The translations under genes and the position numbers were made by a program. DNA of 62,590 bases, counting the filler, from Klebsormidium nitens (lineage: Eukaryota > Plantae > Klebsormidiophyceae), in NCBI GenBank assembly GCA_000708835.1. It is 7 parts of 7 records of this genome, joined end to end, with 100 filler letters (N's around TTAATTAATTAA, not from the genome) between each part and the next. Parts side by side here need not be neighbours in the genome. Positions count along the whole stretch, not along the records: positions 29,838 to 44,300 come from DF238052.1; 6 more parts are not named here. The stretch is one strand, 5' to 3'. The notes under the pieces are model-generated. The model made no database searches and was not told where the DNA came from. It saw only the letters and a list, made by a program, of their open reading frames with translations. Shown here piece after piece: positions 2,050 through 44,482 of the stretch (position 1 is the stretch's first letter; each line of letters starts with the position of its first letter).

Positions 2050-3300
2050 GCTTCGAAGTTTTTCGCAGTGCTTCAGACGTTACTAGTAATCACCAAAGAG
2101 ACGGCCAGCGTCGCCTAGTAAATGGTTCTTTGTGCAGTGGGCTCTCGAAGCGTCTTCCCTGTGCTTGCCTTTGGACTTTCTCCGCGGCGCTCTGAAGGCA
2201 AAGCGCCAGACTTCGAGGATGGCCAACGGGTGAACGGCACCATCTTGCCGCAGCTCGCGGCGCTCGATGGGCTGCCAGTGTTGCAGTCAGGCGGGGTCGT
2301 CATATCGTCAGGTCAGGAGCGCGCGTTCCGCTCGTCGGCGTATACCGTCTTTGATGCGCGCACGCGATATCGGAAGGGCGACGGCTAAATGCGCGCAGCG
2401 CTGGGGCCCAGTTCGAAAGGAGGCTCTTGAGAACGGCGACGTGTAATGTCGTTAGGACCGGCAGGCCGCAGCATTACGTATACATATCTCTATCTTTCGG
2501 TTCTCCTAGAAATTGGGCCAGAATTGGCTGAATCATGAAGCCCCATCGCGCTTTGAGACTGCTCTTTCTCGACGTCGAATGTCGCAGGCAGCCGCTAAAG
2601 ATGCGGCGATACTGCGCGAGAGTCTTCGGTGCGGTCTGGGACGCTCGCTTGTCAGAAGAGCTGATAGTCTAGAATCCCCCAGAGCTGGAGGGAGGATCTG
2701 AATCACTTTTCACCGCTTTTACCTTTGAACGCCCATCAAAGGGCCAGCAGAACTGGAATACTAGGATTGTCTCCTGATTGTTTCGCAGTTTGAATCGTGT
2801 TTGATATGAACAACCGTGGTCCTGAATCACTGGCCGGCATTTTGAGGGTTCTCCAAGGGGCAGATCTGATAAAAACTCAAAGCTTTGCACCAGTATTTGG
2901 CTATCAGCTTATGGGAAAGATTGCTACTTCAAAAGAAAATTGAAACTGTAAAGAATGTGCCGGTCGTGTTCTATCATAATCCAATTCAAAAGATGATCAA
3001 TGCCATAATCAATGGATTCCGTCGAACGTCTTTGGGACCAATGCCCCGTTGGCGATTGTGTTCCGTTCCTCGCAGGATATGACAGGTGCGGCTTTCACCG
3101 CACCTCGACCACTTCGGAGTTCCGGTACTTTGGCCGAGAAATAACTGAAAGAAAGCTGAACCAAAGGGGCCTTTAGGAACTATCTCGAAATACGTGCACT
3201 GAGTCTCAAATCTACGAATAAATGTCTTCCACAAGTAACTCCGTCTGCCAGCTGCCACTCAATAAGAGCCGTTCAGGTATATGTACCAAAGCCGGCGGGT
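2050..3300 (+). pseudogene. Decayed inverted paralogue of the Cys-rich secreted protein gene at 3898-5732
   Basis: 2050-2275 aligns with the reverse complement of 5670-5870 (ggcaaagcgccagact..gatggccaacg..cttgccgcagctcgcggcgctcg; NGTILPQLAAL vs NGTALPQLAAL). 3074-3300 resembles the last exon (EFRYFGRE vs ECGYFLPE; NSVCQ vs NTLRCQ) and has in-frame stops. Confidence 0.65.
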
Positions 3301-3897
3301 AGAAACAACACGACTCTGCGAGCTCGCAATCGGACGACTGGCATGCGCCGCCTGTGAGAATCAAGCGGATTTGATACATAACTGCGAATATGTTTAGCCC
3401 GATCATTTGGCAGTCCAAGGAAGCCCTGGCAGCGCATATACGTACGAAACGAGCTACGCATACGTAGCTTGTACGTTTGCTCTTAAGAGCTTCTCTTTAA
3501 ATTGGTCCAGCTATAATGACTGGACAACGTTGTCCCTTGACGGGGTTGAAGCCTGTGCTAATTGACAGAAGGAGAAGGCTACATATATCGGGCGTGTTCT
3601 ATCTTAACCAAGCTTACATGTTATACCGTTTCCAATAATGTAGATTACAACTTGTCCGACGAAGAGTATGGAAGATTTCTAAGCCAGTCTGCTACGATTT
3701 AGTAACCCTACGGACTATAACTACTGTATATGCACTCTTCACGACCTGTTACATTAGTCACGAAGATATTGACTCTATTCTGATATACACGTAGCAATGG
3801 TGTCCCGTTGACTGTCAACTAAGGTACCCTTCTTATTGCGGATCACTTTGACCGCGACCTCCACTGGTGAGCAGCAACCAGCGAGGTTCGTGACACA

Positions 3898-5732
3898 TTA
3901 GCACGAAGCAGTATACGGGCAGCACGTCTTATTCGCCTGGATCACCCCCGTATACTTGTCATATTCGCAGCGCTGCGGCGAGCCGTTGGTCCCAGATGGC
4001 TGGCACCGGAGAGTGTTGGCATTATAACTCTGGTCGAACGTGCGAGTACACAGGTCATTCGATGGGCAGACGCAGACGCTATCGGCTAGCCCGCGCCGCG
4101 TGGACGCCTCTTCTGGGAGGAAGTAGCCGCACTCCTCCCCGGTGTTGGCGTTCAAGCTGTTGCCGTCCTCCTGACGTCAGCGGTGGAGGAAGTGACGTCA
4201 GCAGAAGCCAGAAGGGTAGCAGGTTTTCTCGACGGTCTTCGGACAATGACGAAAGAGTAAAGCTATCCAAGTTGGAGAAATTAAAGGGCGGATTTGTCCG
4301 GCTTGGACGATGTCGAGGTTCCGCTAAAGTTGCTTTCGACATGAGGAAACATTTGCAAACGGACAGCGCACGGAAGAATCTGAGATAGGCATTGACAGGT
4401 GTCGCGGACTTAGTGTACCAAAAGAGACGTAACCTTTCAAGGTCCTTCGCAAGTACTTTGACGTACCCACTACAGATGCACCCCAACTAGTTCGTAACAA
4501 CTTTCAGAGCACGCGTTGTGTGGGTCCGACGCTCCAGCAGCTAGTATAGCATGAAACTTTTCAAACCAGGAAGTGGATCTTCTCCTATCTTGCCCGCTTC
4601 AAGTCGGCGTGGCGACTGAGATGTCGACAAGCACCTGATCACGTAGGATGCATCTCCTCATAATCGTCACAGCTAACAAATATTCCGGCCTGCGGCAGGT
4701 GTGAAATTGCACTGTCGCGGCGGGGTTGGATGCTTACATAGTTGAAGCAGCCGACGTTGTACCCGGCAGCCGCGGGGCAAGAGCACTTGGAGCTTCCGGA
4801 AAGGCTGCAAAAGTGAAAAAAGAAGCTTGCGATCTTCGCTGTTCAATGACCTCGCTTTTCCATACAAAACGAGGCTCCGTCGGGCAAGAGGGGCAGGGTT
4901 GCTGTAAAGCTGGTTGGGGTTGGACTATGCAATTTGGACCTCAACTCCTCCTAAACACCAGGCTAGCCCCACCCGCTTGTCAAGGACCAGTTTAAGGCAC
5001 ACCGGGATTAAATTGAGTAGATCGGTACCCTGACTAATCCGCAGCACGTCAACACTTACAGTAAAGTTGGAGGAAATTGTCGTCCCCAAGACGTAGTTTT
5101 ACAAGGTGGGCTGTTCATGACCGTCAGTGTCAAAGTTCTGTATCTTGTAGGCTGTTGCACTGAATCCACTTCCCCTGTTCTAGTTATCGTTTTATAGGAC
5201 TTTCGTCTTAGAAAGTCGCCGGTCGTTACAAGCATGTTTTAGTTTATGTACCTTCTGGGTCAAACATACTAAAACGTCCGCTGTCTATGCAGCAGCTTCC
5301 TGCAAGAATTTCTGGTTCGAACATACGAAAACGTCCACCATTTTTGCATCTTCCTGTTAGAACGAATCACCAGTAAAACTTACCTGGTTTGAAACTGAAG
5401 ACCATAATCATGACCATGACCAGCTTTCTAGTGACTCACCAGCAAAACTGGATGGAACCGTCCACCCCATAGCACGGCTGGTGTGCCAGCCCCGCGTCCC
5501 TCAGGTCCGTATTGTCATAGAAACCGCACGCGTAGTGGTTCACGGGGTTTCCCATGTTGTCTGTTTCGAAGTCGCCGACGTGCCCGGAAGAGGGCTTGAG
5601 CGTCCGGTGCGCCAGCGCCGGCTGCGCTACTCCGTTGAGCATCCAGAATGACGTCAGCACGGCGAGCGCGAGCGCCGCGAGCTGCGGCAAAGCGGTGCCG
5701 TTGGCCATCGTTACAGTCTGGCGCTTTGCCAT
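3898..5732 (-). CDS. Secreted cysteine-rich protein, ~210 aa, 3 exons (5732-5440, 4804-4738, 4170-3898)
   Basis: Hydrophobic signal peptide (LPQLAALALAVLTSFWMLNGVAQPALA). GT-AG junctions join in frame (..SIQFC|CLSGSSKCSCPAAAGYNVGCFNY|EDGNSLNANTGEECGYF..KTCCPYTASC*). Family not recognised. Confidence 0.7.
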
Positions 5733-29482: not shown

Positions 29483-30119
29483 TCTGTATATAAAATCGGA
29501 CGTACCCTTGCAAACAGCCGCTTTTTAGCTAAGACTTCCGAAGTTCGTCACTGAAACGGTCAAAGTTGTTGGTAGTGTGCCCTGAATGGTGGCAAAACAC
29601 GAGGTGGGTGTGCCGCGTTACCTTTTCCATACTTCGACGTCAGATCTGAAAGTCCTTGAAAATTAAATCTGGGAGAAAACTTCTTGTAGCATTTGCTATA
29701 GCAGCACGTGTATTGAACTAGAAATGCCACCGGATCANNNNNNNNNNNNNNNNNNNNNNNNNNNNNNNNNNNNNNNNNNNNTTAATTAATTAANNNNNNN
29801 NNNNNNNNNNNNNNNNNNNNNNNNNNNNNNNNNNNNNCTGCAGAACTTGCCGCAGGCCAACAAGGGCGGGGAGAAGAAGGGAAACTAGTTTGCCGTAGAA
29901 CCCGGTATTTAATTAGAGACACTTCTGATAAACCCTTTGCCTCCGATTGGTATTGCTAAGTGACATTTCTACCTAGTACTTACGCCATGATGAGGTAGCA
30001 TGTCATGTTAGTCATGTTGCTTTGTTGTTAGTAACTGCTTGGTACCTAGCTATAGAAACATTTTTTGATGAAGCCCAAACTCCGAAATTGCTTGTTTCTG
30101 CGCCATGGGCCCAGATGCC

Positions 30120-30535
30120 TAAGCGTGTATAAAAAGAAGTGACCATCTCCGGCTGTGCACATTTTGGCGACTTGACCAAAGTGGCAAGCGCGCTCGCCTT
30201 GAGGTCGAAAGAAAGCTGCGGCCCGGTGCGGGTTCGAATCGAACGCATTTGACATTTTTGCTCTCTTTTGCCCCTTCCTTTTTGCGACGTTTTGCGGCTG
30301 ACGTAGGGTGATGTCAACGCGCGGGAACCGCGGTACCTACTGGTACGATACCTGCGGACAGCCTCCGGTCCCTGCGCCGGGACCGGGAGCCATGCTTCGG
30401 TCGGTACCGCATTCGGCTGGTCCTTGAAAGGTTCCGTACCGTGTCGATCCTCCGACAGATTCTGATCGTCCGATAAGTTTCACTCGAATGAATACACCGT
30501 TCGATCAAAATGCAAGCGCGCTTGCTACGCCCACC
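30120..30535 (+). mobile_element. Second copy of the TTAA/tRNA-like element family (left end eroded)
   Basis: TATAAAA (~30128), A-box TGACCAAAGTGG (30173), AGCGCGCTCGCCT shared with the 14.9-kb copy, B-box GGTTCGAATC (30231), shared ttgacatttt..ccttcctttttg, and terminus TACGCCCACC|TTAA (30536-30539). Confidence 0.65.
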
Positions 30536-30555
30536 TTAAGTTCCTTATTTACTTA

Positions 30556-30969
30556 CCGTCACTTTGAAGTGGCACCCCCTTAGGTATTCTGTTGGGGGGG
30601 GGGGCTTGGTTTGGATCAGCCAAGCAAAGGTGGGGAAAGGGGGGGGGCTTGAGGCTTTGCTTGGGGCGGAGCCCCAGCCAGGTTTCAAGTGAAAAGCCTG
30701 CGTTTTCATGCACATTTACCCTTATTTTGTTCAACGTTCCGACTTTTCAGCCCAAGAACGAGACAAAAAAGCACTTTGCAGCACCAAAATGGGGCAAAAT
30801 CCATGTATAAGATTGTGTTTTTAAACCAAAAACTTGCCCGGTTGGTAGCCCACCGGACTAGGACCTTGACCTTGCCCGTATTGACAAGGCCGGGAGAGGG
30901 GGGTTGCTTGAGACCCTTATGCCAAAGTGCCTCCAAAATACCTAACCGGGTGCCACTACAAAGTGACGG
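30556..30969. mobile_element. Tc1/mariner-type MITE (TA target duplication, ~38-bp TIRs)
   Basis: TA|CCGTCACTTTGAAGTGGCACCCCCTTAGGTATT ... AATACCTAACCGGGTGCCACTACAAAGTGACGG|TA. Confidence 0.8.
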
Positions 30970-31681
30970 TACCCTTTAATACTATGAAAGTTTATCCCTA
31001 TGTGTGCAGGTACCTACACCGGTACATGGGTAGGATATCGGGTGTGACGGTTAACACACCAACGCCAGAGCACCGGCATACAAGCAGCCGGCATTTAAGC
31101 AGCTCTTCGGGGCCTCCTATATTGGCTTGCCTCTTCCTCTGAGGAAGTAGGCAAAAATAGGAATCGGGCCCACCGCCACTGTACGGCGCCGCGAGGCGGG
31201 CCCGCCGTTCGAGGTGCTTGGATTGGCTGTGTTCGACGATAAATCGCACGGTACGGCATAAAAAAATGACTGCATAAAGGTGCGAGATTTTCCTCGACTG
31301 GAGTCCCCAAGCGGTGCGGTCAACGCTTACGAATCGATCATATTTGGTCACAGCGGTTTGTGGCTTGCTTTTTTGTCAGTCTGTATTTACGCCAGCGCCG
31401 GATTTCGCGATCGATTGGCAGAGGGAGTGGCTGTACACCGTCGGATTCTGCCTTGATGTCGGTCTCGTGTCGTCGGCCGTCGATTTTGTTCTTATGTTGG
31501 TGGTTTGTTGGTAGCTGGTGATCGATCCTGCATGTTGACAATCGGTTCGTCGATATGCGGTGGCTTCTTCTTCATTTCTTTCACTGGGCTTCAGAGCTTG
31601 GTCTTTCGGTGTGTGTGTCTTTCAGCTAATTACGCAATGCTGTTGATGGTGCTGAAGCCTGTGCATTAGAGGCGCTCTACG

Positions 31682-32530
31682 ATGGCTTCGCCTGCCGATG
31701 ACGTGGATAGGTATGGTCCGCAAGACCTGGTTGGTCTTTCAGTGTGTGCTGATAGTCTCGATGGTCGCTTTCAGAGGTGCGCTGGAGAGGTGATAAGCTG
31801 GGAGGGTGAGGAGGTTGGGTTCTCTGTCAGGGTTAGGTCGCCGCATTTTGACAGCGGGAAAGTGGTGGCAGGGGTGCATGCGCACGAAATGAGTTATCTG
31901 ACTTCTGGTCGCTCGCGTCACCTGCCGTCTTCTGCTGAGGTACATTCTAGGTCTGGAGGGACACAGGAGCACGAGTTTAGTGGGCGGTATAAGGGTGTGG
32001 GTCGGAAGAAGCGTGCTGATCTGCCGTTTGAGATTAGATGTGCAGTTGCTTCGAAGCAATATCGGATAGGCAAGTTTGCATCTGAGGAACAGGCAGCGAG
32101 GGCTTATGACTATGTGGTCGGGGCATTGATGGCGGAAGGGGCGCAGCATCGTCCACTCAACTTTCTGGAGGGGGTGGTGATGAGTGCAGGAGAGCGGGCA
32201 TATGCTGATGAATGTTTAGCCGTTATAAAAGGTAAGATTGGTCAACGAAAAATCGGATGCAAGCTGGAGCATTCTTCTGCGCACTACTCTGATTCTTCTA
32301 ATGCTGTGTCTGCTTCGAGATTTGTTGGCGTGTCCGTGCAATTAAATCGTGGGGATCTGCAATATCGAGCGCGGATAAGAGTTTCTAATCGTGTGTTCGA
32401 GCTTGGCTTGTACAAAACTCCTTTTGAGGCTGCTATGGTTTACGATTATGTCGCCCGTCGAAGTGTGGCTGGACGGAGATTGAATTTTCCATTGAATTTC
32501 GATCTTCAACCGTACATGAAGAAGTGGTAG
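31682..32530 (+). CDS. Two-AP2-domain ORF, apparently the frameshifted N-terminus of the Helentron RepHel protein
   Basis: AP2 #1 SGRYKGV..RIGKFASEEQAARAYDY..LNF; AP2 #2 SRFVGV..YRARIRV..ELGLYKTPFEAAMVYD..LNFP. It overlaps the start of the Rep ORF in another frame (EEVVERLNRV). Confidence 0.8.
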   Translation: MASPADDVDRYGPQDLVGLSVCADSLDGRFQRCAGEVISWEGEEVGFSVRVRSPHFDSGKVVAGVHAHEMSYLTSGRSRHLPSSAEVHSRSGGTQEHEFSGRYKGVGRKKRADLPFEIRCAVASKQYRIGKFASEEQAARAYDYVVGALMAEGAQHRPLNFLEGVVMSAGERAYADECLAVIKGKIGQRKIGCKLEHSSAHYSDSSNAVSASRFVGVSVQLNRGDLQYRARIRVSNRVFELGLYKTPFEAAMVYDYVARRSVAGRRLNFPLNFDLQPYMKKW

Positions 32531-35500
32531 AACGCTTGAACCGCGTTCTAGCTGAAATGATGCCGGCACATAAATGCCCGGCGGATGATCCAAGTGAGAA
32601 ATCGTTCGACGATATCATTCGTGAGTTTCGGTGCTCGAGTGATGAAGGTCCTCTTTATGTCTGCAGTGGTTGTCGCCGCATTTGGTTCTCACATTCAGTC
32701 CATAAGCTCAGCGATAGTTTGAGATGCCGTCTTTCTTTCTCTGAGACTTCTGCTTGGCTGTCTGGTCGGCGGTCTCTTGGTAATGAGGAGTGGATTTGTA
32801 CGACATGTAGTCGATATTTGTTAAAAAAGAAATGCCCGCCTAGAGCTCCGTGCCGACAGCCTGACTTTCCGCGGTTGGATCTCGCGCTGGAAGGACTTAG
32901 TGGTATGGAGAATGACCTCATCGCTCTACGTCTCGCTTTTATGAAGATGCGGGGCTTACCGCCATCGGTGGGCGGAGGTCCGAGGAGATTAGGACAACGG
33001 GCGCTGAAAGGGATGGTTATCAATGTTTCGGCTGATTTGAGTAGGATCCAAATCGCTTTGCCTCGTTTCGTGGATTCGGAGGGTACAATTCCTGTAGCAA
33101 TGAAGTACAAGCTTCGTAACAAGGCCTGTTATCGAGCGGCTGAGAACGTGCGTCCCGCAAAGTTGCGTGATGCTTTAGCTTTTTTAGTTTCGCAACCAAC
33201 TTTATGGCGCGAAGCGCATGTGACCATTCGCTCGGATTGGTTAAACGGAACTGGAGCGTTTGCAGCTTCAGATCTGCGTGCGTCTTTGGCTGTCAAAAAT
33301 GGTCTTGGGATTGAAGGTGGGATGCTTCCAGATGCTTCCGTTTCTTCTTCTTCTGATTCAGTCGACGAGTCTGACGATGACGATCGTCTTCCGCCGGAGG
33401 AAACAATGTTGCATGATGTGCCATCGTTCGTAGCTTCTTATACTTTTGGTATCAATGTTGCTCTTGCTGAAGGGCAGATTCCGGTTGGAATGTTGCAAGA
33501 TCCGTATGCGGAGGAGAAAGCTTTTCCTTGTCTCTTTAATGGCTACGCTAGACCGGTTAGCGCGCTGAGTTATAGTCGAATATGCAAGTTTGAGCTCACA
33601 AATGAGGATCGTCGCTTTGCACGCTATCCTAGCAACATTTTCTTTAAATTTCGAAAGTTACAAACCATTTTCGTGGCCGGCAAGTCATGGGTGCGGCTGC
33701 GTAAGAAGAAGTTAACAAATTCAGCGCCTCCTACCGCTGGAGAATTGCGGAAACCCGACTTCAAAACTTCTCTCATGTCACAGAATGTGGGGTTTCGTGA
33801 TTTCAAAACGTTGCGTGGAAGCCCAGAGTACAATCGGCAGGGGAAGAAAGAAGCGTTTGCAACAATACGACAGCTTGGTCCTTTCCAAATATTCGCAACT
33901 TTCAATATGGCAGAAACGCATTGGAGCGCTCTGTTGCAAAACTTACAGTACTTAGCGACTGGAGAATTTATTGCAAAAAATGCTGCTCTAGATTTGCCGT
34001 GGATTGACAAAGTGCGCTTAATTCGAGACGATCCCGTTACAGTGGCGCGCTGCTATTGTAATCGTCGATCTCATCTGCTCCGCGTTATCCGGAAGTATCC
34101 GTCTTTGATTGGGCAAGTTACGGATTTCTTTTGGCGGGATGTGAAACGTTCTTNNNNNNNNNNNNNNNNNNNNNNNNNNNNNNNNNNNNNNNNNNNNNNN
34201 NNNNNNNNNNNNNNNNNNNNNNNNNNNNNNNNNNNNNNNNNNNNNNNNNNNNNNNNNNNNNNNNNNNNNNNNNNNNNNNNNNNNNNNNNNNNNNNNNNNN
34301 NNNNNNNNNNNNNNNNNNNNNNNNNNNNNNNNNNNNNNNNNNNNNNNNNNNNNNNNNNNNNNNNNNNNNNNNNNNNNNNNNNNNNNNNNNNNNNNNNNNN
34401 NNNNNNNNNNNNNNNNNNNNNNNNNNNNNNNNNNNNNNNNNNNNNNNNNNNNNNNNNNNNNNNNNNNNNNNNNNNNNNNNNNNNNNNNNNNNNNNNNNNN
34501 NNNNNNNNNNNNNNNNNNNNNNNNNNNNNNNNNNNNNNNNNNNNNNNNNNNNNNNNNNNNNNNNNNNNNNNNNNNNNNNNNNNNNNNNNNNATCCCCGCG
34601 AGGGGCTCGGAAAGCTAGCGCCGTTACAGGATGAGTTTCAACAACGTGGAACGCCTCATACGCATGCTGCTTTTTACTTGGCAGATGCACCAAGATACGG
34701 AATCGATGATGACTCTGTTGTTGTCGCTTTTATTGATAAGCATGTGACTTGTTCTTCGACTGGAGCGTGCGCGACTGATTTGGCTGCTCAGTACCATCAT
34801 CATCTGTCAGATTACTGCCTAAAACGTCGAACAGCCGAAGGGATGCCCAAGTGTCGCTTCGGATTTCCTAGACCTCCGTTGCATGAGACTATGATTCTGC
34901 GGCCTCTGCCAGAATGCTTGTCGGACTTTCGGAAGCGAGAGTGTTCTCGGATCTATAAGCGAATCGTGGACGGAATAAAGTGGTTGGAGTCTGATGAAGC
35001 TGGTGTTCAAGATTGGACCTGTTTCGAGTTTTATTCTAGGATCTCTCTCTCGCCGGCTGAGTATGTATTAGGTCTGCGTTCACTACTCACCAAGCCGGCA
35101 GTGTTTTTGAAGCGGTCTCCAAAGGAGATTCATATGAACAACTACAACCCTAATCTGTTAAAACTGCTTGGAGGCACGAATATGGATTTTCAATTTGTTC
35201 TTGAAGCATATGCTGCGGCAAATTATATCAGTTCGTATATGATGAAGACGGATTTCAGGCTGAGCAGAATTTTAGAACAACCGTACGCGGACGCACGACG
35301 AGGTAATATGGAGCTACGTCGAGGCATAAGGCACGTCGGAATGGCTCTTTTGAAAGGGCAGGAGGTCTCGGCTCAAGAAGCTGTGTATGGATGTCTGGGA
35401 TTACCGTATAGATATAGTTCTCGGAAGCACATTTTCATTCCTTATGGTGTGCCGGAGAGTCGCACGTTCGCGATCAAGCTTTACGCTGTCTCCCTGAGGA

Positions 35501-38482
35501 TTCTACGGATTACATTTCTTCTAATATCATTGACAAATACGCCATGCGATTACAAAATTCGAGTTTACAAGGCACCGAGCAGATATCTTTAGCTGATTTT
35601 GCTGCTTGGTATGAACCCACGTCTAGCTTTCCGGTTCCAGAGGAGGAAATTAACGACGACCAGGAACCCAGTGTAGAGTGTGAGAAAAGCGTGGAATACG
35701 AGTTACCGGCTAGTGCTCGAACTGCTCGCAGCTGTCGTATATATCGAAGACGACATAAGGCGAAAATCATACATTTTGTGGGTTATAAGAGAGCGCAAGA
35801 TCTAGAGTTGTTTTGTCGTGAGCGAATCCTTTTGTTTCTTCCCTGGTCTTTCGAAGGCGACAGCCTGGCAGTACTTAACGCAGAGGAAGATGGTATTTTG
35901 CTTGCGGGTTATGATAGCTTTGAATCTCGATATGAAGCCGAGAAAGAAACGGTAGAAACGACAGCCGCGAATTACAATTATCAAGCCGGGCTCGATTGGG
36001 ACGAGCTGGAAAAGTACGCTGAAACTCTAGCTGCTGAAGATGCGGAATTATTAGACACGTTTTCTGGCGATTTGCCGCCTGTCAACCCGGGCGCGGAGAG
36101 TACGAGAATTCCGCCGGAATCCGCGTCGCCAGCAGAATCAGCGGTGCCAGCGGAATTCACCGTTTCTCCTGATTTCTCTCCGTCAACAGCGTCGGTTACA
36201 GAAGAGAGGCTGCCAAGCGCGCAGGTTCTGTTGACTGACGAAGATTTCCGTTTTCAAATGCGCGCACACACGTCAGCCCAGCGGGCATATGTCGACCACG
36301 TGGTGCATTGCTTGAAATTTCCGGGGGATCACAAGCTTGTAGAATTTCTCACAGGAAGTGCTGGAACAGGGAAAAGTCTAACGATTCGCTGCATCACTCA
36401 ACTGGTGGCGCGAACTTTCAGTGGTGCTCTAGGTTTGCATTCGTCGTCTCTGAAAGTTTTGCTTTCTGCGTTCACCGGAAGTGCTGGTTTCAACATAGTT
36501 GGAGTTACGATTCACTCCGCGTTCAGGATTCCCTTATATGCAAAACTGGAGACATTTGTGCCCCTTGGTGGTGAACGAAAAGCTATTCTCAGAGATGCTA
36601 TGTGGATTTGCAAGGGGACGTCGTAGATGAAATTTCTATGACGGGTACGAAAATGCTACAAATGATCAATTATAGAATGCAGGAGATCTTCGAATCCTCC
36701 AAAGTCTTTGGGAGTATGCCAACAATTTTTGGGGGAGATCTGTTTCAATTGAAGCCGCTGTGGGACGGGTATTGTTTTGAAGGAATTTGGAAAAAGGGTG
36801 TACTAATAAGCAACATTTGGGAAGAAAACGTTCGTATGTTCGAACTTGTTCAGATCATGCGTCAACAAGGTTGCCTGGAGTTCGCTGAGGCGTTGAGCCG
36901 CTTACGAGTCGGGGAACACACAGCTGCAGACCTCGCGTTATTTGGAACTAGAGTCGTAGACCCGTTAAATCTACCCGTCGAATATTCACCTTTTGACAGG
37001 CACATTTTTGCAACACATAAGAAGAGAGACGCACATAACGCTTTAGTGCTGCGCTTGACCAGAGGGCCCGAATTCACTTTGCGTGCCAGAGATGAGGCCT
37101 TATCATGTGGCGCGTCTTTCCGCGAGCAACAGCATTTTATGACCAAAGCTGAACAGATGCCAGATACGCAAACAGCGACTCTATATACACTTCTCAGTCT
37201 TAAGGTTGGTCTCTTGATTGAAGTCACTTGTAATATTGACATCCCGGACGGCTTATATAACGGGGCGACCGGGTATATTCGTCACTTTCACGATCTGGGC
37301 GGTTCCGATCCACACGCTGTATGGGTAGAGTTCACAGAAAGTCGAATCGGAAAACGTTCTCGAGAGCAATCATCTAATTTGTACCGTCTCTGCCCTTCTG
37401 TGGATCCTATTTGGACACCAATTTTTCGGCTTTCTCGTACGTTTCAGGCAACACAGAGAGTTGAAAGTACCGTGTTACGAACTCAATTTCCGCTTCGCCC
37501 CGCAACTGCGGGGACTTTCCATCACACTCAGGGAATGACCGTGCGTAAGGGGGCTCTGGATTTCAGGGGTGCTTCTAAGAGTCATGTTGATGCGGAGCGC
37601 CATTATGTAGGATTAAGCCGCTTTCCCGATCTGCAAGGACTACTGATCTTGGATCCGGCTTTTGAAGAGATATTGGTAAGTCCAAAGGTAATTACGGAAA
37701 TGGCACGGCTTTGTCAACACGCTTCTGTCATTCCTTGCATCCCGTACGTGCCACTCAGTGACGGAAGTGACCGACAATTGCACCTGATTGTGCACAACGT
37801 GCGTTCTTTCCGTTTGCACGTGCCGGACATCTTTGCTGACGTCAACTTTACCCGCAGTCACATTCTTGTGTGTACAGAAACTCGGACGTTGCCAGCGTGG
37901 CCGCTAACTGCTCTCGTTCAATCAGACTTCAACGTGTTTCGCGCTGAAGCCGATACTTCAACTAGGGATGGATTTGATAACGTTCTGGTTTGCCTTACGA
38001 CTCAGGACAGCTCTTTAAGTGGCACTTTCCATTCTGCTTTCTCTGATTTCAACACGCAGCTGTTGTGCATACACATTCGAGGGCGACCAAACCCGGATCT
38101 TTTTGTAATCTCTGTATATAGATCTCCCTCTGATTTTCTAGTCAGCAGATTTCTCGACAATCTCAGAGTGTTTATCGAGCAAATGGAACAGAGATCTTTA
38201 AAGGCGTCTCCATCCGTCGTATGCGCAGGTGACTTTAACATCAATTTGCTGAAACCTTCACACGAAGCCCAACAACTCGTAGATCTGATGACTTCTTGCG
38301 GAGCATGTTTGCTAAACTCGCTACCGACAACTAACCAAGGTACTTTGCTTGACCACGTTTGGGTATCTGCCGACTTAGCACGTACATGTTCGGCAAGAAA
38401 CTTAGAAGCATATTGGAGCGACCACAGCCCAATTCATGCTACATTCCAGTGGAACGGAGGCGCTCAACAAACTTCAGCGTGA
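32524..38482 (+). mobile_element. Degenerate Helentron RepHel: Zn finger, HUH Rep, PIF1 helicase and APE endonuclease; frameshifts near 35490 and 36610, insertion at 34142-34628
   Basis: CxxC pairs (CSGC, CTTC). Rep motifs FATFNMAETHW, FFWRDEFQQRGTPHTH (after removing the insertion) and YISSYMMK. Helicase motifs LTGSAGTGKS, VVDEISM, GGDLFQL, QFPLRPA and YVGLSR. APE motifs HNVRS, TET, GDFN, LDHVW and SDH. Confidence 0.92.
34142..34628. mobile_element. LTR-type insertion (TG...CA ends, 5-bp TSD), interior hidden by N-gap
   Basis: GGATG|TGAAACG ... CGTTACA|GGATG (TSD at 34137-34141 and 34629-34633). Removing it restores W-R-D-E-F-Q-Q-R-G. Confidence 0.8.
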
Positions 38483-39330
38483 ACTTCTGTGGACATGAGG
38501 TAAGTACATAGATACACGTGCTGAACTTTTTTGTGGAGTTTAGGCTGTCTTTGCGCTCACTTGTACCGCGCCTGCAGACCGTTTGTAGATTTCTAAGGTA
38601 CGCTGATCATTGCATACTCATGTGCTTCCAATTAAGAGCGACAAAACCACGCTCGAGAATAGGATTTCGCGCTTTTGTTCCAATCGAGCTTTTAGTTTCT
38701 GAACTCGATTGGTCGATTTCTGTCACACCTAGTTCGTCATCAGGTAGCAGTCTTTATGACGTGCCCCAGGCCGCGCGCGCGAGAATTACGTAGGTGCGCG
38801 CGCACTGTCTGTGCTCAAGGTCTCTGATTTCCGCATCGTCAGTGGATACAGTGGTACGTGGGGGGTGTATTATATCTTCGACTTCTGCGACCTCAACAAA
38901 CAAACATGCATGGACATTTGCGTAAGCACTGTGATTTCGGCGACTTCTCAGATGTCTGCCAACTTTGCAGCATGCAAACCTTCCGATTGACACGTCGGCA
39001 TCTTAAGAGAAGCTCCTCCTTTCCGTAACTTTTGTGACTCCAATATCTCCTAAGCAAAGAAGCACGACTTCTTCGACGCATGCTGCTCACAGTCAATTAT
39101 CCTAGCTGACCTCTTTATTCTCAAACAGTTCACTCGGCCTTCTCAACCTTCTAGTAGGCACAAGTTCTTTGCTTGCTTCCACTTTCTGCTTCCTACGATT
39201 CCGTGCAAGTAGAGCAATAGCCAAAAAGCTAACAGTGTAGCAAGCAGCCGCGCAGGGTTTAACACGAAGCACGCTGCTCTGTAACTCTCGCTGCTGAGCA
39301 TTGCTTAGAGCACGACCCGCGCCGGCCACA

Positions 39331-42300
39331 ATGGAGGTACCCACAGTAACCGTGAAACAGATTGAAGAATTTCCGGTAGACTCGAGCCTGTTCCAGGTGC
39401 ATGCCAGGGTAGTTGACCTTGACAGCCCCACAGAAAACAACGAGCCTAGAGTCCGCGAGCTTCCGTTCGGGCATCTCTCAACCATGGCTGCAGTCCTTCA
39501 GGATAAGGAAGGAACCAGAATAACGCTGGAAGCCACGAGCAAAGATAAGAGCTTTGTCGAGTATGTCAGCGACAAGTGCGAGAAAGAGAGCACAATTCTG
39601 CTGTACAGGCCGACTGTGGCCTCGTGCAGGTACGCATGCAAGAAGTCTGGGTCTTCTGGGAAGAACCTTCTTTGCTGAGCTTGTGCATGCTTCTTTATTC
39701 CCTCTAATATTTTCCTAGGAACAGCAGTTTGTTGAAGTCGGTGCTCTATTGTGTTGACTCTATAGGCCGCAAAGATGCTTGCTGTATGCGAGACCCTATC
39801 GCCCATCGACTTCAGCGTTTATGCGTGACATAAAAACGCACTCTAGCTTTGGTGCTTAAGAAGTTGCTTGACTGTTTTATAGCAGGCAGCAATTTGAAAC
39901 TTATTGCGACGAACACATACTAATTGCATCTTCTTTTTTCCAAAATTGCGATGAAGGTACTCTCTGACAGATCATCCGACGTCTCTGAAAGTGGTGGAAG
40001 ATCGCACGGTTATTCTGGGCTCGAGCGAGCACATCGATACAGTGTCGGAAACTTCCGTCAGCTTCGGCGCGCTCCAGCCCGGCGGGGTGAGCACTAAGAG
40101 AGATTACCGTTGATGGAGTGGCGCTTATGACTTTCACACTGATACGACCTAATGCACGTAACGCTTTTTGTTTCTGTTTCTGTTTTTCCCAGCTGTCTAC
40201 TAATCCAAGAACCATACTGCTCTCCAATCTTCTGTGCCTTTTTTGAAACTGTTCTGAGACCACGCTTCGTTGTTTCCTTTCGCTTCTTTGTTTCTTAATT
40301 GCCCAAGAACTCCGATGCCCTCTAGTCGTTGCGTTCTTCTTTGAGATGATTCGGAAAGCTTCTCCAATTGAGTAAAGGATTTACGCGTAGCTCCCGAATT
40401 CTGCGTGCGAGTACTGTGCTCCTTAAGACTGTCTTCAGACGACCCCGCTTTCAGCACATCGCGTAACAAAACGCTCGCATACAGAAGAATCATTTTGGAA
40501 ATCGCGTATCATCTGCTTCACAATCAGCGCCGCATCTTTTCCGTCACCTTTGGCTGGCAAGCTGATTATGCACCTTTTCCCCAGAAGAACGTGCGAGTTC
40601 ATATGAAAGGAGCTAAGTAAGATCACTGCTGTGCTCTGAAGAAGTCGACAAGTAGCACTCACGTTCACATGTTTTGGCGTGACGCAGGTGCACAAAGTCG
40701 AAGGCCTGCTAATCTACAAGAGTCGTATCTCAACGCCCACGACAGCCAGGGGCGACCGTGACGTCATGAAAATCGTCATCAAAGACATGAACGGGATCAT
40801 GGGTGGGATTGCGATCTCGGGCGACATGGCGCACCTTCCAGAGCTGAAGAAGCTCAAGGTTCGCGAGGACGTCGTCGTGGTCAGCGGAGTTCAGTATGAT
40901 CAAGATCAGGGCTGCAGCAGTACCAGAAAGTGAGTCTGCTGTCTTCTCCGGCACTCCCATACTTTGCTGATCTTATCAGAATTGATTGTTGATAAGGTGT
41001 TTCTAGTAATAGACCACTTTGTTGATTCTGGCGGACCTCGTGCGACTGAAAACGGTAACAAAGCAACAAAGCAGACTTGACGTTCTCTTCCTACTGCTTT
41101 CGAAGACCGCAAAAAAACTTTGGTGGAACAGACTGGTTTGCTATTTCTCTAATGCTTTCAATGATCTTCAACTCACTCACACGTTGCGTCAAAAATAATT
41201 TGCGGCCTTCCTCACTGTCTTGTCGTAGATGCATTGAGATAATGGAAGAGTCGCAATCTTCGAATGAGCAACTCAATGAATTACAGAAGCCGAGTTAATC
41301 GGGGTGTCACTGACATTAAACCGTTTGCCTTTCTCCACAGCACTACGATTGCTCGAAGCGACGCGAGCGCACCTGCTGTAGCCGGGATAGGGCTGACTTA
41401 CCGGGTGTGCACCGTCGATCGGATCACTCCGTGGGCTCGCGACGTCCAGTCACTCGCGGGAAACAAGTGGACGACCATGACGGCGCTGGCAAGCTTCACC
41501 AACCTCACCAAGATTGACTCCATCGGATATGCAGCTCAGCCAGCCGCAATCCGGTGACGCACGAGATGTTCTGCGACCAAGGCTGCCAACCGGGCCCGCT
41601 GGAAGACGCGTGCATCAAAGTCACGTTAGGGTGGATGCCGGACGTAAGCTTCCATTCCGTGACCCTTACGTTTGTCCGGCTGATTCATAGATATGCAACT
41701 TTTACTGTCGGTCGACTTCTTACGCTTCTTCGCTATAACAGATGCGACGAACTAGACCGCTGAGAAAATTTTCTGAAAGGCGGCAGCTGTACTGCGCGGC
41801 CGCGTGCGCGGCGCTTATCGGCTGCCACGTGGCGTCCTGTATTCCGGCGTTCATGCACACAAGTATTAAAAACATACAGATCCCGCTTTCATTCGCCTTC
41901 TCACGTTTCTCCACTGTATCAGACACAATAAGCTGGATCCTTTGAAGAAAATTCTGAAAGGCGGCAGCTGTACTGCGCGACCGCGTTCGCGGCGCTTACG
42001 GCTGCCACGTGGCAAACTGCATTCCGACCCTCGTTGTCACCCACATAGCTATTTAGGACACATAGCTCTCACCCACGTTCGACTGCTTTCTTGATTCTCC
42101 GCTGTCTCAGATGAAACAAACTAAATCGTTTGAAAAGTTTTTGAAAGATGCTAGCTACACAGCGCGGCCGCGTGTGGCACGCCTGTCGGCTGCCACGTGG
42201 CAGATCACGTCTCGGCGCTCGTTGCTGAGCACACAGCTGTTTAAGAACTCAATGTTTCTTCTTAGACCCAAGCGGCCATCCGATCAGTTACTTCTCCTAT

Positions 42301-42669
42301 TTCATGCACTTCTGTGAAAGCGAGCGTTCTTTTCGATCTATACTTCTAGTTTCAAAGTCGAAAACTCTTCTACGCTTCCTCAGTCAAATTTCTCTTCTTA
42401 CAATTACCGCAGCGGATGTGCTGTCCGTGAAGATCTGGCCGAACGAGTTCGCGCTCGTGACGGGCGCGCATCTGAAGAGCTTCTCTGCCAAGCCCCCGAA
42501 CGAGCAACTGGAGAATCTGAACACCCGACTCAAGAATCGCAGCTTCGCGATGCACCTGCGCATCCGCGAGAACCCGAATACCCAGTACAGTCAGTTTCAG
42601 GCCAACGTGATTGGTCTCGAGCTGCCTCCGGAATTCCGCTTTTTCAACAAAAAATACAAGGCAGAATAA
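39331..42669 (+). pseudogene. Multi-exon RPA70-like OB-fold ssDNA-binding protein gene, probably Helitron cargo, with at least one frameshift (~41555)
   Basis: OB-like segments at 39331-39629, 40688-40928, ~41341-41643 and ~42410-42669. The C-terminus (LSVKIWPNEFALVTG..FAMHLRIRENPNTQYSQFQANV) resembles RPA70 DBD-C. The GC-rich segments have GT/AG borders; the exact exon chain is unresolved. Confidence 0.6.
41761..42215 (+). repeat. Three diverged ~180-188-nt tandem units inside the RPA-like gene intron, each with GCCACGTGGC
   Basis: gaaa..ctgaaaggcggcagctgtactgcgcg(g/a)ccgcg..cggctgccacgtggc at ~41761, ~41941 and ~42130; G-boxes at 41824, 42004 and 42192. Confidence 0.9.
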
Positions 42670-44482
42670 AGCAATCCAACTATAGCAGCCTAGATTGTGA
42701 TTACGTCAGATAAGATTTGTGGACAATTCTGGTATGGGAGGAGAGCAATAAGTGCAAACCTTTCCAAACAGATGCATAGTGTGCGCTCCAGTTTGGAGAA
42801 CACGAGATACTTGGCCTGGTTAAATCCGTAAATTCTATAAGCTAGGGTGTAGAACTATTACTTCAATCTTTGCTATTCACAAAAAATGATTTACTAAAAG
42901 TGATTCATTAGAAAGTGCAGCGTACATAGCGGAGCTCAGAGCACTCGTGTAACATTTGAACTTGTTCTGGAAAAGTGAGCGCAATTTGGCTTCATTTGCA
43001 TTTAGATAATTCTATACCATAATTCAATGCATGGCTCGCACGCACAAGAAACCAGATTATATTGCATCCAGGAGGTGAATGACGCAATTGTGATAAATGC
43101 ACCCGTTACAAGATGTCTGTCGAGCTATCGGCTCCATCATCTCCTTTGCAAAGTCGAATCTGCATGCGCGTAATGTGGCAAGGATTCAAGAGAAGCGAGT
43201 AGGCCCAGAACTGCCGCAAAAGGTGGTCGAGCAACGCCCAGTCCTGTGGGCAGTTTGCGGGACCAATATTCATAAATGTCCCTGCTTTCGTCTCCTATTT
43301 CCACATGACACTCACCCACGAGAGCGTTGACCCAGCAGCTTCTTATACACACTTTTAGCCAATAGCAAGCATCCGCAACTCACACGTACATACGTGGCCG
43401 TCTGAGCAACGACAAGAGCTCGCCTCTTTTGTGAATATTTCACTGATTTCGCACGAATGGTAGATGCTCCATGAGAGTCATATGCTGACTTATCAAGCAT
43501 CCGGAATCATTTTTGCATTAGGTCTTAGCTATTTCAACTTCCAACATACATATCAATTCAGCGTGGAAACTGAGAATGGATGAAATAAGAGCCACAGTGA
43601 ATCTCGTGGTTGCATTCGAACACTGGTTCGTACGAGTAAAACAGTCTCTGAGACGTTTTCGAAATGTTTTTGATCTGCTCTCAAGCTATGGCGATTTTGC
43701 GTACTCGATTATTGCTACTACTGCTGTGATCTGACGGCTTTGAGCTTTCTGGATCCGTAGTTGAACCTCTGCTGACTGTCGGTGTGCAGCCAGATGTGCA
43801 GCTTGACGGCGCTCGATGATGGCGTTGGGCGAGTTTCCGGGCTGAGAGCGTAGCCTATGGAGTAGATCTTCTGCCTGCATAAGATGAACAAAAAAAACTG
43901 AGCGTTTCATACTGTGAACGTTGCTTTCAATCGCGCTATCAGATAAGCCGTACTTCAAAGAATGCCAACGCTCTTCACTTAGTCATCGCCTCCACTGGAT
44001 TAGCTGTGCCTATCCGGGCGCGTCCAACTTCCGTCATGGGCCGCGCTCTAACACTGACTCTTGTTATACAGCAATTCTTTGTCTTCAGCATTCGTAGAGG
44101 ACTCAGGCTTTACTGATTGTTCAGAAACGAAGCTCACTTCACGAGTGACCCAAGTGAACGGCAATGAAGCTGCCTACTATCCGTTAAAGTTGATATGTTA
44201 ACGGCACCAGAAGAAAGAAGATAGAAACAAGCCTGATTGTATCTTATATAAGGAAAGTGTGACGATTCGAATCTATGAATCTTCATATCGAACTCGTCCC
44301 NNNNNNNNNNNNNNNNNNNNNNNNNNNNNNNNNNNNNNNNNNNNTTAATTAATTAANNNNNNNNNNNNNNNNNNNNNNNNNNNNNNNNNNNNNNNNNNNN
44401 AATTGTTTACTTTAGAAGGTTACGTGTCCCTATGCTTCCCTCCTGATCGACTATATGTAGCCAGCTGATGACCCGATTTTGC

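Follow-up and report, generated by a model that had tools for sequence, protein, structure and literature searches.

The stretch of DNA analysed here (62,590 nucleotides (nt), seven parts of seven records of the Klebsormidium nitens assembly GCA_000708835.1 joined end to end, hereafter the window) carries a Helentron (HLE2 with an APE-type endonuclease) that possesses an additional N-terminal module. At positions 31682 to 38482, four successive frames of the plus strand encode a small barrel, two divergent AP2 domains, a Zn-finger/DUF6570 region, an HUH Rep, a PIF1 helicase and an APE. The AP2-RepHel architecture is a conserved in-frame fusion, occurring in at least eight copies from several samples. 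From these copies we predict, with a probability of about 0.82, that the family encodes a polyprotein of ~2,170-2,250 amino acids (aa) with the order barrel, AP2, helical linker, AP2, Zn-finger/DUF6570, HUH Rep, PIF1 and APE; this figure applies to the architecture and the family assignment and not to the function of the AP2 domains. The analysis was confined to positions 29838-44300 of the window (record DF238052.1, hereafter the window piece). Open reading frames (ORFs) were taken as stop-to-stop frames, and the pieces of the window gene were searched separately.

The original prediction, made from the sequence alone, had described this element as a Rep-PIF1-APE Helentron, and the Pfam matches bear this out. 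DUF6570 (PF20209; 33.8 bits for a cut-off of 24.3) is found upstream of Rep, followed by Helitron_like_N (PF14214; 42.5 bits for a cut-off of 28.9). PIF1 (PF05970; 27.2 and 39.9 bits, above the curated cut-offs) follows Rep, and Exo_endo_phos_2 (PF14529) is matched above its cut-off with 44.3 bits (PF03372 with 22 bits). The HUH, YxxxY, Walker A, Walker B and SDH catalytic motifs are all kept (Table 1). DUF6570 is described as a marker of HLE2 in the main text of the HELIANO survey (PMC11417382). The window piece exhibits a GC content of 49% and a CpG observed/expected ratio of ~1.07.

Relatives were found by phmmer with the 282-aa AP2 ORF, by a word search with the helicase-APE (Hel-APE) piece, which yielded L001, and by a profile search, which yielded L013 and L014. 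The barrel and AP2 module is present in seven related copies from other samples (L001, L002, L004, L005, L006, L013 and L014), and is collinear among copies down to an N-terminal MA(S/T)P. In five of them (L001, L004, L005, L006 and L014) it is in frame with the Zn/Rep region, so that the proposed fusion of AP2 domains with RepHel stands. L001 exhibits one 1,271-aa ORF with the N-terminal segment, the AP2-like pair (200-340), DUF6570 (455-590) and Helitron_like_N (700-894), and the module likewise continues in frame into the Zn-finger region in P0074/L005, P0075/L006, P0073/L004 and P0140/L014. In L013 (367-6873), one frame of 2,168 codons opens with the N-terminal MATP and extends through the entire APE, broken only by one internal TAG. 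In the more distant and degraded L002/L003, Rep is still preceded by the barrel (4323-4676) and by a stretch resembling AP2 (4913-5308). Four of the relative contigs come from one run, SRR23617307, and are highly divergent from each other; such strong divergence within a run points to a diversified multi-copy family. On the L014 contig, a zf-MYND ORF (3025-3594) comes after the one with Helitron_like_N, close to where the contig ends.

Table 1. Features identified in the window piece (positions count along the window; aa, residue numbers in the AP2 ORF)
Feature	Position	Strand	Basis or remark
Conserved 5' non-coding block, candidate left terminal/cis region	31113-31350	+	blastn
Barrel and AP2 ORF	31670-32527	+	start modulo 3 = 2
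Small beta-barrel, SH3-like fold class (Tudor, KOW or PWWP-like), predicted, aa 1-73	31682-31900	+	seven copies, AF2, VIA
AP2 domain 1, divergent, aa 98-162	31973-32167	+	sub-threshold Pfam, AF2, WRI1 fold match, phmmer, phrog_953
Helical linker between AP2 domains, predicted, aa 169-195	32186-32266	+	AF2 helix H169-195; WRI1 profile alignment
AP2 domain 2, aa 208-272	32303-32497	+	profile against PDB, VIA, phrog_99
Zn/Rep frame, crossing the N gap	32428-35589	+	start modulo 3 = 1
Frameshift 1, net -1 nt, linker between AP2 domain 2 and Zn finger	32507-32508	+	tblastn and MAFFT against L001, P0073, P0074, P0075
Zn-finger region, DUF6570, Helitron_like_N	32509-34140	+	Pfam, motifs; 50-61% identity to L001, L005
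CxxC pairs	32662-32679 and 32794-32808	+	motif search
DUF6570	32827-33243	+	Pfam
Helitron_like_N	33586-34137	+	Pfam
Copy-specific insertion holding the gap, at least 49 nt	34141-34626	+	missing from all relatives
Rep catalytic core	34627-35478	+	motifs; 52% identity to L001
HUH motif HTH	34657-34665	+	motif search
Two-tyrosine motif YISSYMMK	35224-35247 (YISSY 35224-35238)	+	motif search
Rep-helicase linker and helicase N-terminal half, frame	35418-36623	+	start modulo 3 = 0
Frameshift 2, net -1 nt	~35472-35478	+	tblastn segments of P0244 and P0245 overlap; both uninterrupted
Rep-helicase linker and PIF1 N-terminal half	35475-36596	+	Pfam; aligned to P0245 residues 705-1093
Walker A GSAGTGKS	36354-36377	+	motif search
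Helicase C-terminal half and APE, frame	36575-38479	+	start modulo 3 = 2
Frameshift 3, net -1 nt, codon reduced to GC	36597-36598	+	P0001 and P0245 uninterrupted
PIF1 C-terminal half, APE and stop codon	36599-38482	+	Pfam; 49% identity to P0001
Walker B DEISM	36626-36640	+	motif search
APE-type endonuclease	~37754-38434	+	Pfam
SDH motif	38417-38425	+	motif search
Second conserved ORF, possible OB-fold single-stranded DNA-binding accessory gene	39301-39678	+	tblastx, BLASTP

Frame changes, assembly gap and the state of the window copy

The four long plus strand stretches are shifted by a constant step in start position modulo 3. The frameshift joining the AP2 and Rep frames, which had been placed at ~32520, is real and lies at 32507-32508, where the dinucleotide CA separates CTT (32504-32506; L in the AP2 frame) from ACC (32509-32511; T in the Rep frame). 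L001, P0073, P0074 and P0075 are uninterrupted at this position. Beyond this single predicted shift, two others were identified, at ~35472-35478 and at 36597-36598; these two split the frame from Rep to PIF1, which is unbroken in L013. L001 in turn is broken at places where the window is continuous. Since the window is shifted where its relatives are continuous, and vice versa, the ancestral gene was a single ORF. Introns were rejected as the cause of the three frame changes, each being a discontinuity of 1-2 nt relative to uninterrupted relatives. Programmed -1 frameshifting at the AP2/Rep junction was also rejected, as there is no slippery heptamer at 32504-32511 and the relatives are continuous.

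A run of N letters (34154-34591) lies within the Zn/Rep frame. Its length of 438 nt (3 x 146) is an estimate, and the 1,022-aa ORF reading through it arises only because this estimate is a multiple of three. To the left of the gap the protein reads ..DFFWRD and is followed by 13 nt unrelated to the relatives; to the right, 36 nt unrelated to the relatives precede DEFQQRGTPHTH. L001, L002 and L005 read DFFWRDEFQQRGT(P/A)HTH unbroken across the gap position (FFWRD/EFQQRG), and the tblastn segments from L001 and L002 abut over the gap, overlapping by two residues. As the flanks abut in the relatives, the two sides of the gap belong to one collinear gene from which no coding sequence has been lost. 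The sequenced flanks of the inserted segment (34141-34153 and 34592-34626) start with GT, end with AG and repeat GAT at both junctions. Judged from these flanks, the segment could be intron-like, a nested insertion accompanied by a short duplication of its target, or noise from the contig ends.

The window copy is either young and recently inactivated, or else partly mis-assembled. In the latter case the frameshifts, and perhaps the gap insertion too, would be assembly or sequencing errors and the genomic copy would be intact and potentially active. This explanation concerns the state of the copy and not its architecture, and is compatible with the fused polyprotein. The gene exhibits no substitution-type stop in ~2,200 codons, its catalytic motifs are intact, its three shifts share the same direction (net -1 nt), and a scaffold gap lies within the same gene, all of which would fit such errors. 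However, none of the three shift sites lies in a homopolymer, and other copies are damaged too (two breaks in L001, the TAG in L013, frameshifts in L004 and L006); the lack of stops would also not be unexpected for a young dead copy with only three indels. We consider errors rather improbable as the source of these lesions, while giving them real weight.

A lower probability is assigned to a barrel and AP2 module that is made not only within the transposase but also as a separate protein (a regulator or an end-binding factor). Such a product would arise if translation stopped or changed frame, or the transcript were spliced, in the linker that connects AP2 domain 2 to the Zn finger. The first frameshift of the window and the only internal stop of L013 (TAG at codon 372, 1480-1482) both fall within this ~40-aa linker, and captured domains mostly occupy separate ORFs in other Helitron-like elements according to the HELIANO main text (PMC11417382). 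Five copies are nevertheless open in frame through the linker, the two lesions are at different positions, and the window junction lacks the slippery heptamer mentioned above; a separate protein is thus unlikely, and the in-frame fusion is retained in what follows.

Identity of the AP2 domains and of the N-terminal barrel

Pfam AP2 (PF00847) matches residues 102-144 of the window ORF with 26.7 bits (E-value = 7e-6), which is below the gathering threshold of 33.3, and gives no match to the second repeat of the window. A hidden Markov model (HMM) scan, as suggested in the original prediction, recovers Helitron_like_N, PIF1 and the endonuclease above their cut-offs, and AP2 below its own. As the Pfam scores are sub-threshold, the identity of the AP2 pair has to be judged from profile matches and fold comparisons. 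With the 282-aa ORF as query, an exhaustive phmmer search returned 441 proteins at E-value<=1e-3: the full-length relatives P0073, P0074 and P0075 (41-49% identity, E-values from 4e-65 to 2e-40), then several hundred AP2 proteins. The closest checked matches outside the element family contain 4-9 Pfam AP2 domains each (E-values down to 1e-33); one example, P0076, matches Pfam AP2 with an E-value of 7e-76. A five-sequence family profile searched against the PDB matches the double-AP2 protein WRI1 (7wq5) over repeat 1, linker and repeat 2 (E-value = 1e-7), and, in the second AP2 domain of the family, ERF096 (8e-5), TEM1 (1e-4) and ERF1 (2.5e-4), with E-values for these three structures spanning 8e-5 to 4e-4. 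The PHROG families of HNH-AP2 endonucleases match both AP2 stretches (E-values of 1e-9 and 3.5e-7), phrog_953 (HNH-AP2) corresponding to domain 1 and phrog_99 (HNH endonuclease) to domain 2 (E-value = 1e-9). The signatures YRARI and LG.(F/Y).T..EAA.AYD are kept in the aligned AP2 repeats.

An AF2 model of the AP2 ORF (pLDDT 70.8) exhibits a unit of three strands and one helix twice, with a helical linker between: strands 106-108, 116-122 and 125-132 with helix 135-148 in repeat 1, and strands 217-222, 225-234 and 237-244 with helix 247-260 in repeat 2. Each predicted unit, a three-stranded antiparallel sheet on one helix, would correspond to the AP2 fold. The top Foldseek ranks for the model are WRI1, TEM1 and ERF1. 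In VIA alignments, the scores are Z = 9.3 for WRI1 (127 residues aligned, model residues 100-275), Z = 9.2 for TEM1 (root-mean-square deviation of 2.9 over 66 residues) and Z = 7.9 for ERF1 (2.1 over 59 residues, 32% identity), and the sequence identities to the AP2 structures range from 27 to 32%. Thus, the presence of two AP2 domains, as first proposed, is borne out by phmmer, by the PDB profile and by the fold matches, with Pfam sub-threshold for repeat 1 and silent for repeat 2. On the modelled fold and the sequence matches together, we conclude that the repeats are divergent yet genuine AP2-fold domains.

It is implausible that these stretches are degenerate remnants, or a look-alike sheet-helix motif, rather than functional AP2 DNA-binding domains. 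The failure of Pfam to reach its threshold and the fast sequence change of this part would fit such a reading, as would the alignments, in which the tryptophans conserved in plant ERF strands are not evident. Yet phmmer reaches proteins with several Pfam-verified AP2 domains, WRI1 is matched by profile over both repeats, the VIA fold matches score Z of 7.9 to 9.3, both signatures are present, and pN is lower than pS in the AP2 pair (see below).

The segment preceding AP2 domain 1 is kept in seven copies and gives no Pfam match in the window ORF. Modelled alone, it exhibits five strands with a pLDDT of 86 (AF2). Its best VIA matches (Z of ~6.3-7.0) are tied between YorP, the Tudor domains of LBR, PHF19, PHF1 and TDRD3, the KOW domains of Spt5/NusG, PWWP and NdhS, and matches with Z of 6.3-6.9 fall in the range that VIA rates as common. 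A Tudor/SH3-like barrel had been suggested for this segment. The model supports an SH3/Tudor-like barrel at the level of fold class only, the tied matches leaving the Tudor family not singled out.

Selection, distribution and relationship to known elements

Nonsynonymous and synonymous differences (pN and pS) were compared between L001 and L013. Synonymous sites are saturated (pS ~0.75), and pN ranges from 0.07 to 0.11 in the barrel, Zn/DUF6570, Rep and helicase. The AP2 pair exhibits pN = 0.32 and pS = 0.57 (dN/dS ~0.4), and the APE a dN/dS of ~0.13. Purifying selection acts strongly on the barrel, Zn, Rep and helicase regions, and the AP2 pair changes faster than any other part; this pattern indicates that the module is maintained. 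An AP2 ORF that only adjoins the Helentron, whether as a host gene unconnected with it or as a fragment captured once, would agree with the different frames of AP2 and Rep in the window but can be dismissed as extremely improbable, since seven other copies have the module at the equivalent position, five of them in frame, and its barrel is under purifying selection between element copies.

In a quick maximum-likelihood tree of Hel-APE sequences, which exhibits long branches, the window clusters with P0001, P0245 and P0002 into a single group of AP2-bearing copies (SH-aLRT support of 99). P0003 neighbours this group, and a large group with cnidarian-labelled proteins stands apart. The nearest labelled matches of the window Hel-APE are cnidarian-annotated proteins with 30-35% identity. 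Copies without the AP2 ORF, which the original prediction had named as evidence of a chance capture, do not occur within the AP2-bearing clade, where seven copies carry the module. Outside it, the family HMM detects no AP2 module in L007, L011 and L012. Searching metagenomes with the AP2-module alignment gave no match; when the Rep alignment served as query, L007-L010 were retrieved, four loci that are distant or truncated. AP2 is found in none of them, and most have little upstream sequence. The module looks like a clade-specific acquisition.

The AP2-bearing family shares with the Helentron/HLE2 elements of cnidarians, fish and insects the Zn-finger/DUF6570 region, HUH with two tyrosines, PIF1 and C-terminal APE in one frame; it adds the N-terminal barrel and two AP2 domains, and forms its own branch with P0001, P0002 and P0245. 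OTU-carrying Helentrons provide a parallel. In L012, a distant Helentron on a 125-kb contig (4699-9507) that groups with an Oculina patagonica protein, one 1,602-aa ORF contains OTU, DUF6570 and Helitron_like_N, so that an accessory domain is likewise placed upstream of DUF6570-Rep. However, this domain is an OTU protease rather than AP2, and the Hel-APE identity is only 33%. Double-AP2 plant factors (WRI1, 7wq5; AP2/ANT) also possess two AP2 repeats and a helical linker, whereas the window pair sits in a transposase, is divergent and sub-threshold in Pfam, and its repeats 1 and 2 exhibit no clear pairing with the host repeats in a weak tree. The HNH-AP2 homing endonucleases of phages and cyanobacteria similarly join AP2 to a mobile-DNA nuclease, but with HNH and a single AP2 in place of the HUH Rep, helicase and APE of this eukaryotic element.

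Across 404 species, the HELIANO survey lists 20 additional domains that are carried stably, including RPA, OTU, EN, B3, STPRs and Ssb-like_OB; its main text places them mostly in separate ORFs, with DUF6570, Herpes_Helicase, Herpes_teg_N and UvrD_C_2 as exceptions, and B3 and STPR almost exclusively in HLE1 (PMC11417382). HLE1 elements with B3 or STPR thus resemble the present family in the stable carriage of a plant-type DNA-binding domain, but according to that text in separate ORFs, in contrast to the AP2 pair fused in frame to an HLE2 transposase (PMC11417382). AP2 is absent among the domains in the survey main text (PMC11417382), and our full-text literature searches for AP2 in Helitrons or Helentrons found no paper. 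Set against papers, and not against Repbase or Dfam, the AP2-bearing Helentron family appears to be previously undescribed.

Among labelled AP2 proteins, those closest to the element pair belong to Apatococcus, Trebouxia and Chlamydomonas sp. UWO241, all green algae, together with MMETSP transcripts. An AP2-domain tree (497 domains, 62 columns) is poorly resolved and too weak to name a donor. Within it, a single clade (support 0.88) unites the repeat-1 domains of the elements, and their repeat-2 domains group, with weak support, with domains of other proteins. Repeats 1 and 2 are not sisters, which argues weakly against a recent internal duplication. The data are compatible with the capture of a double-AP2 gene from a host-type source, which fits at least as well as transfer in the reverse direction. 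With green-algal proteins as the closest labelled matches and a poorly resolved tree, the data do not support the suggestion that such elements bear on a mobile-element origin of plant AP2/ERF factors.

Element ends, possible function and neighbouring features

A non-coding block upstream of the AP2 ORF (31113-31350) aligns by blastn with L004 (200-429, 73.6% over 231 nt), L006 (1-76, 79%) and L013 (51-79, 90% over 29 nt). The coding DNA of these lineages has in large part diverged beyond alignment. It contains an imperfect hairpin (31116-31161; DNA fold z = -3.3) and two nearly invariant motifs, CACTGTACGGCGCCGC (31177-31192) and GTTCGACGATAAA (from 31231). The most conserved region (31177-31220) is GC-rich with short palindromes, GGCGCCGC .. 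GCGGGCC, and is a candidate protein-binding or hairpin site. Similarity to L004 starts at ~31118, and upstream similarity is not above that of shuffled sequences. On this conservation, the block is a candidate left end of the element. The window piece, including its downstream part, contains no inverted copy of the conserved motifs, and no right end that would match the block was detected in it. A 5' stem-loop is described for "HLE2-reverse" and proto-Helentron forms in the HELIANO main text (PMC11417382); the hairpin near the 5' end of the window element may be analogous to it. The termini typical of HLE2 were not found in the window piece.

The transposition mechanism of this element would follow the usual rolling-circle route of established Helitron biology, with Rep nicking the element through its tyrosines and the helicase unwinding it in the 5'-3' direction. 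On the prevailing view, Helitron-like transposases locate their ends via the Rep/Zn-finger region and single-stranded hairpins. We know of no established role of the APE, nor of an established mechanism, in Helentrons generally. The double-AP2 module may add sequence-specific binding of double-stranded DNA, and the modelled barrel could bind chromatin or nucleic acid. There is perhaps nearly an even chance that the AP2 pair recognises subterminal DNA of the element itself, the GC-rich 5' block being the candidate site. Less probably, it tethers the transposase to preferred target sites; regulatory or other roles take up the remainder. It is possible, but on the whole doubtful, that this is the first eukaryotic rolling-circle transposon in which a transcription-factor-type reader of double-stranded DNA (a double AP2 with a chromatin-reader-like barrel) steers end recognition or the choice of integration site. 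If so, the fast AP2 pair would be expected to co-diversify with lineage-specific binding sites, and such elements could carry AP2 domains between distant eukaryotes.

Several observations weigh against the polyprotein and the role envisaged for its AP2 pair. The comparison copies come from other samples, and no intact copy was seen from the genome of the window itself, whose lesions may be real mutations or assembly errors. Two of the eight copies (the window by its frameshift and L013 by its TAG) are interrupted in the AP2-Zn linker, leaving room for a separate AP2 protein. Pfam AP2 is below threshold in the window, and among the six relatives scanned it finds nothing in five and 19.2 bits in the sixth. 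Searches of the window piece for element termini found neither short terminal inverted repeats nor a TT target site nor a 3' stem-loop. Finally, the contrast between the fast AP2 pair (dN/dS ~0.4) and the near-invariant 5' motifs argues somewhat against these motifs being read by AP2.

Known mobile elements with AP2 domains comprise HNH-AP2 homing endonucleases and integrase-type domains. With the present family a eukaryotic transposon joins this short list, which is central to ideas on the spread of AP2. An in-frame double AP2 would be a new means of reading double-stranded DNA for a Helitron-like element, and the architecture offers a concrete, testable way into how Helentrons recognise their ends or choose their targets. 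Surveys of captured domains at Pfam thresholds overlook divergent modules such as this AP2 pair.

Downstream of the APE, the second ORF at 39301-39678 is conserved by tblastx in L001 (7605-7790) and L002 (12913-13242), with a BLASTP identity of 26% (E-value = 3e-13) to the L002 ORF. The element therefore reaches at least ~39680. This ORF gives no Pfam match; atlas leads to POT1, Ssb-like OB and REPA_OB (RPA), with scores of 0.79-0.84, are weak and would be consistent with an OB fold. A further ORF (40679-40933) looks OB-like by eye only, with no supporting match. The window piece exhibits no match to Rfam and none in a search for dinoflagellate spliced-leader relics. A general repeat search identified three tandem units of ~181-187 bp (41705-42250, 73-79% alike) 3.2 kb past the APE stop, which Tandem Repeats Finder missed. 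Upstream of the element, positions 30554-30971 hold a 38-nt inverted repeat pair, 89% complementary and 342 nt apart, resembling a miniature inverted-repeat transposable element, and a second inverted pair (30181-30209 and 30500-30528; 29 nt, 79%) is located nearby.

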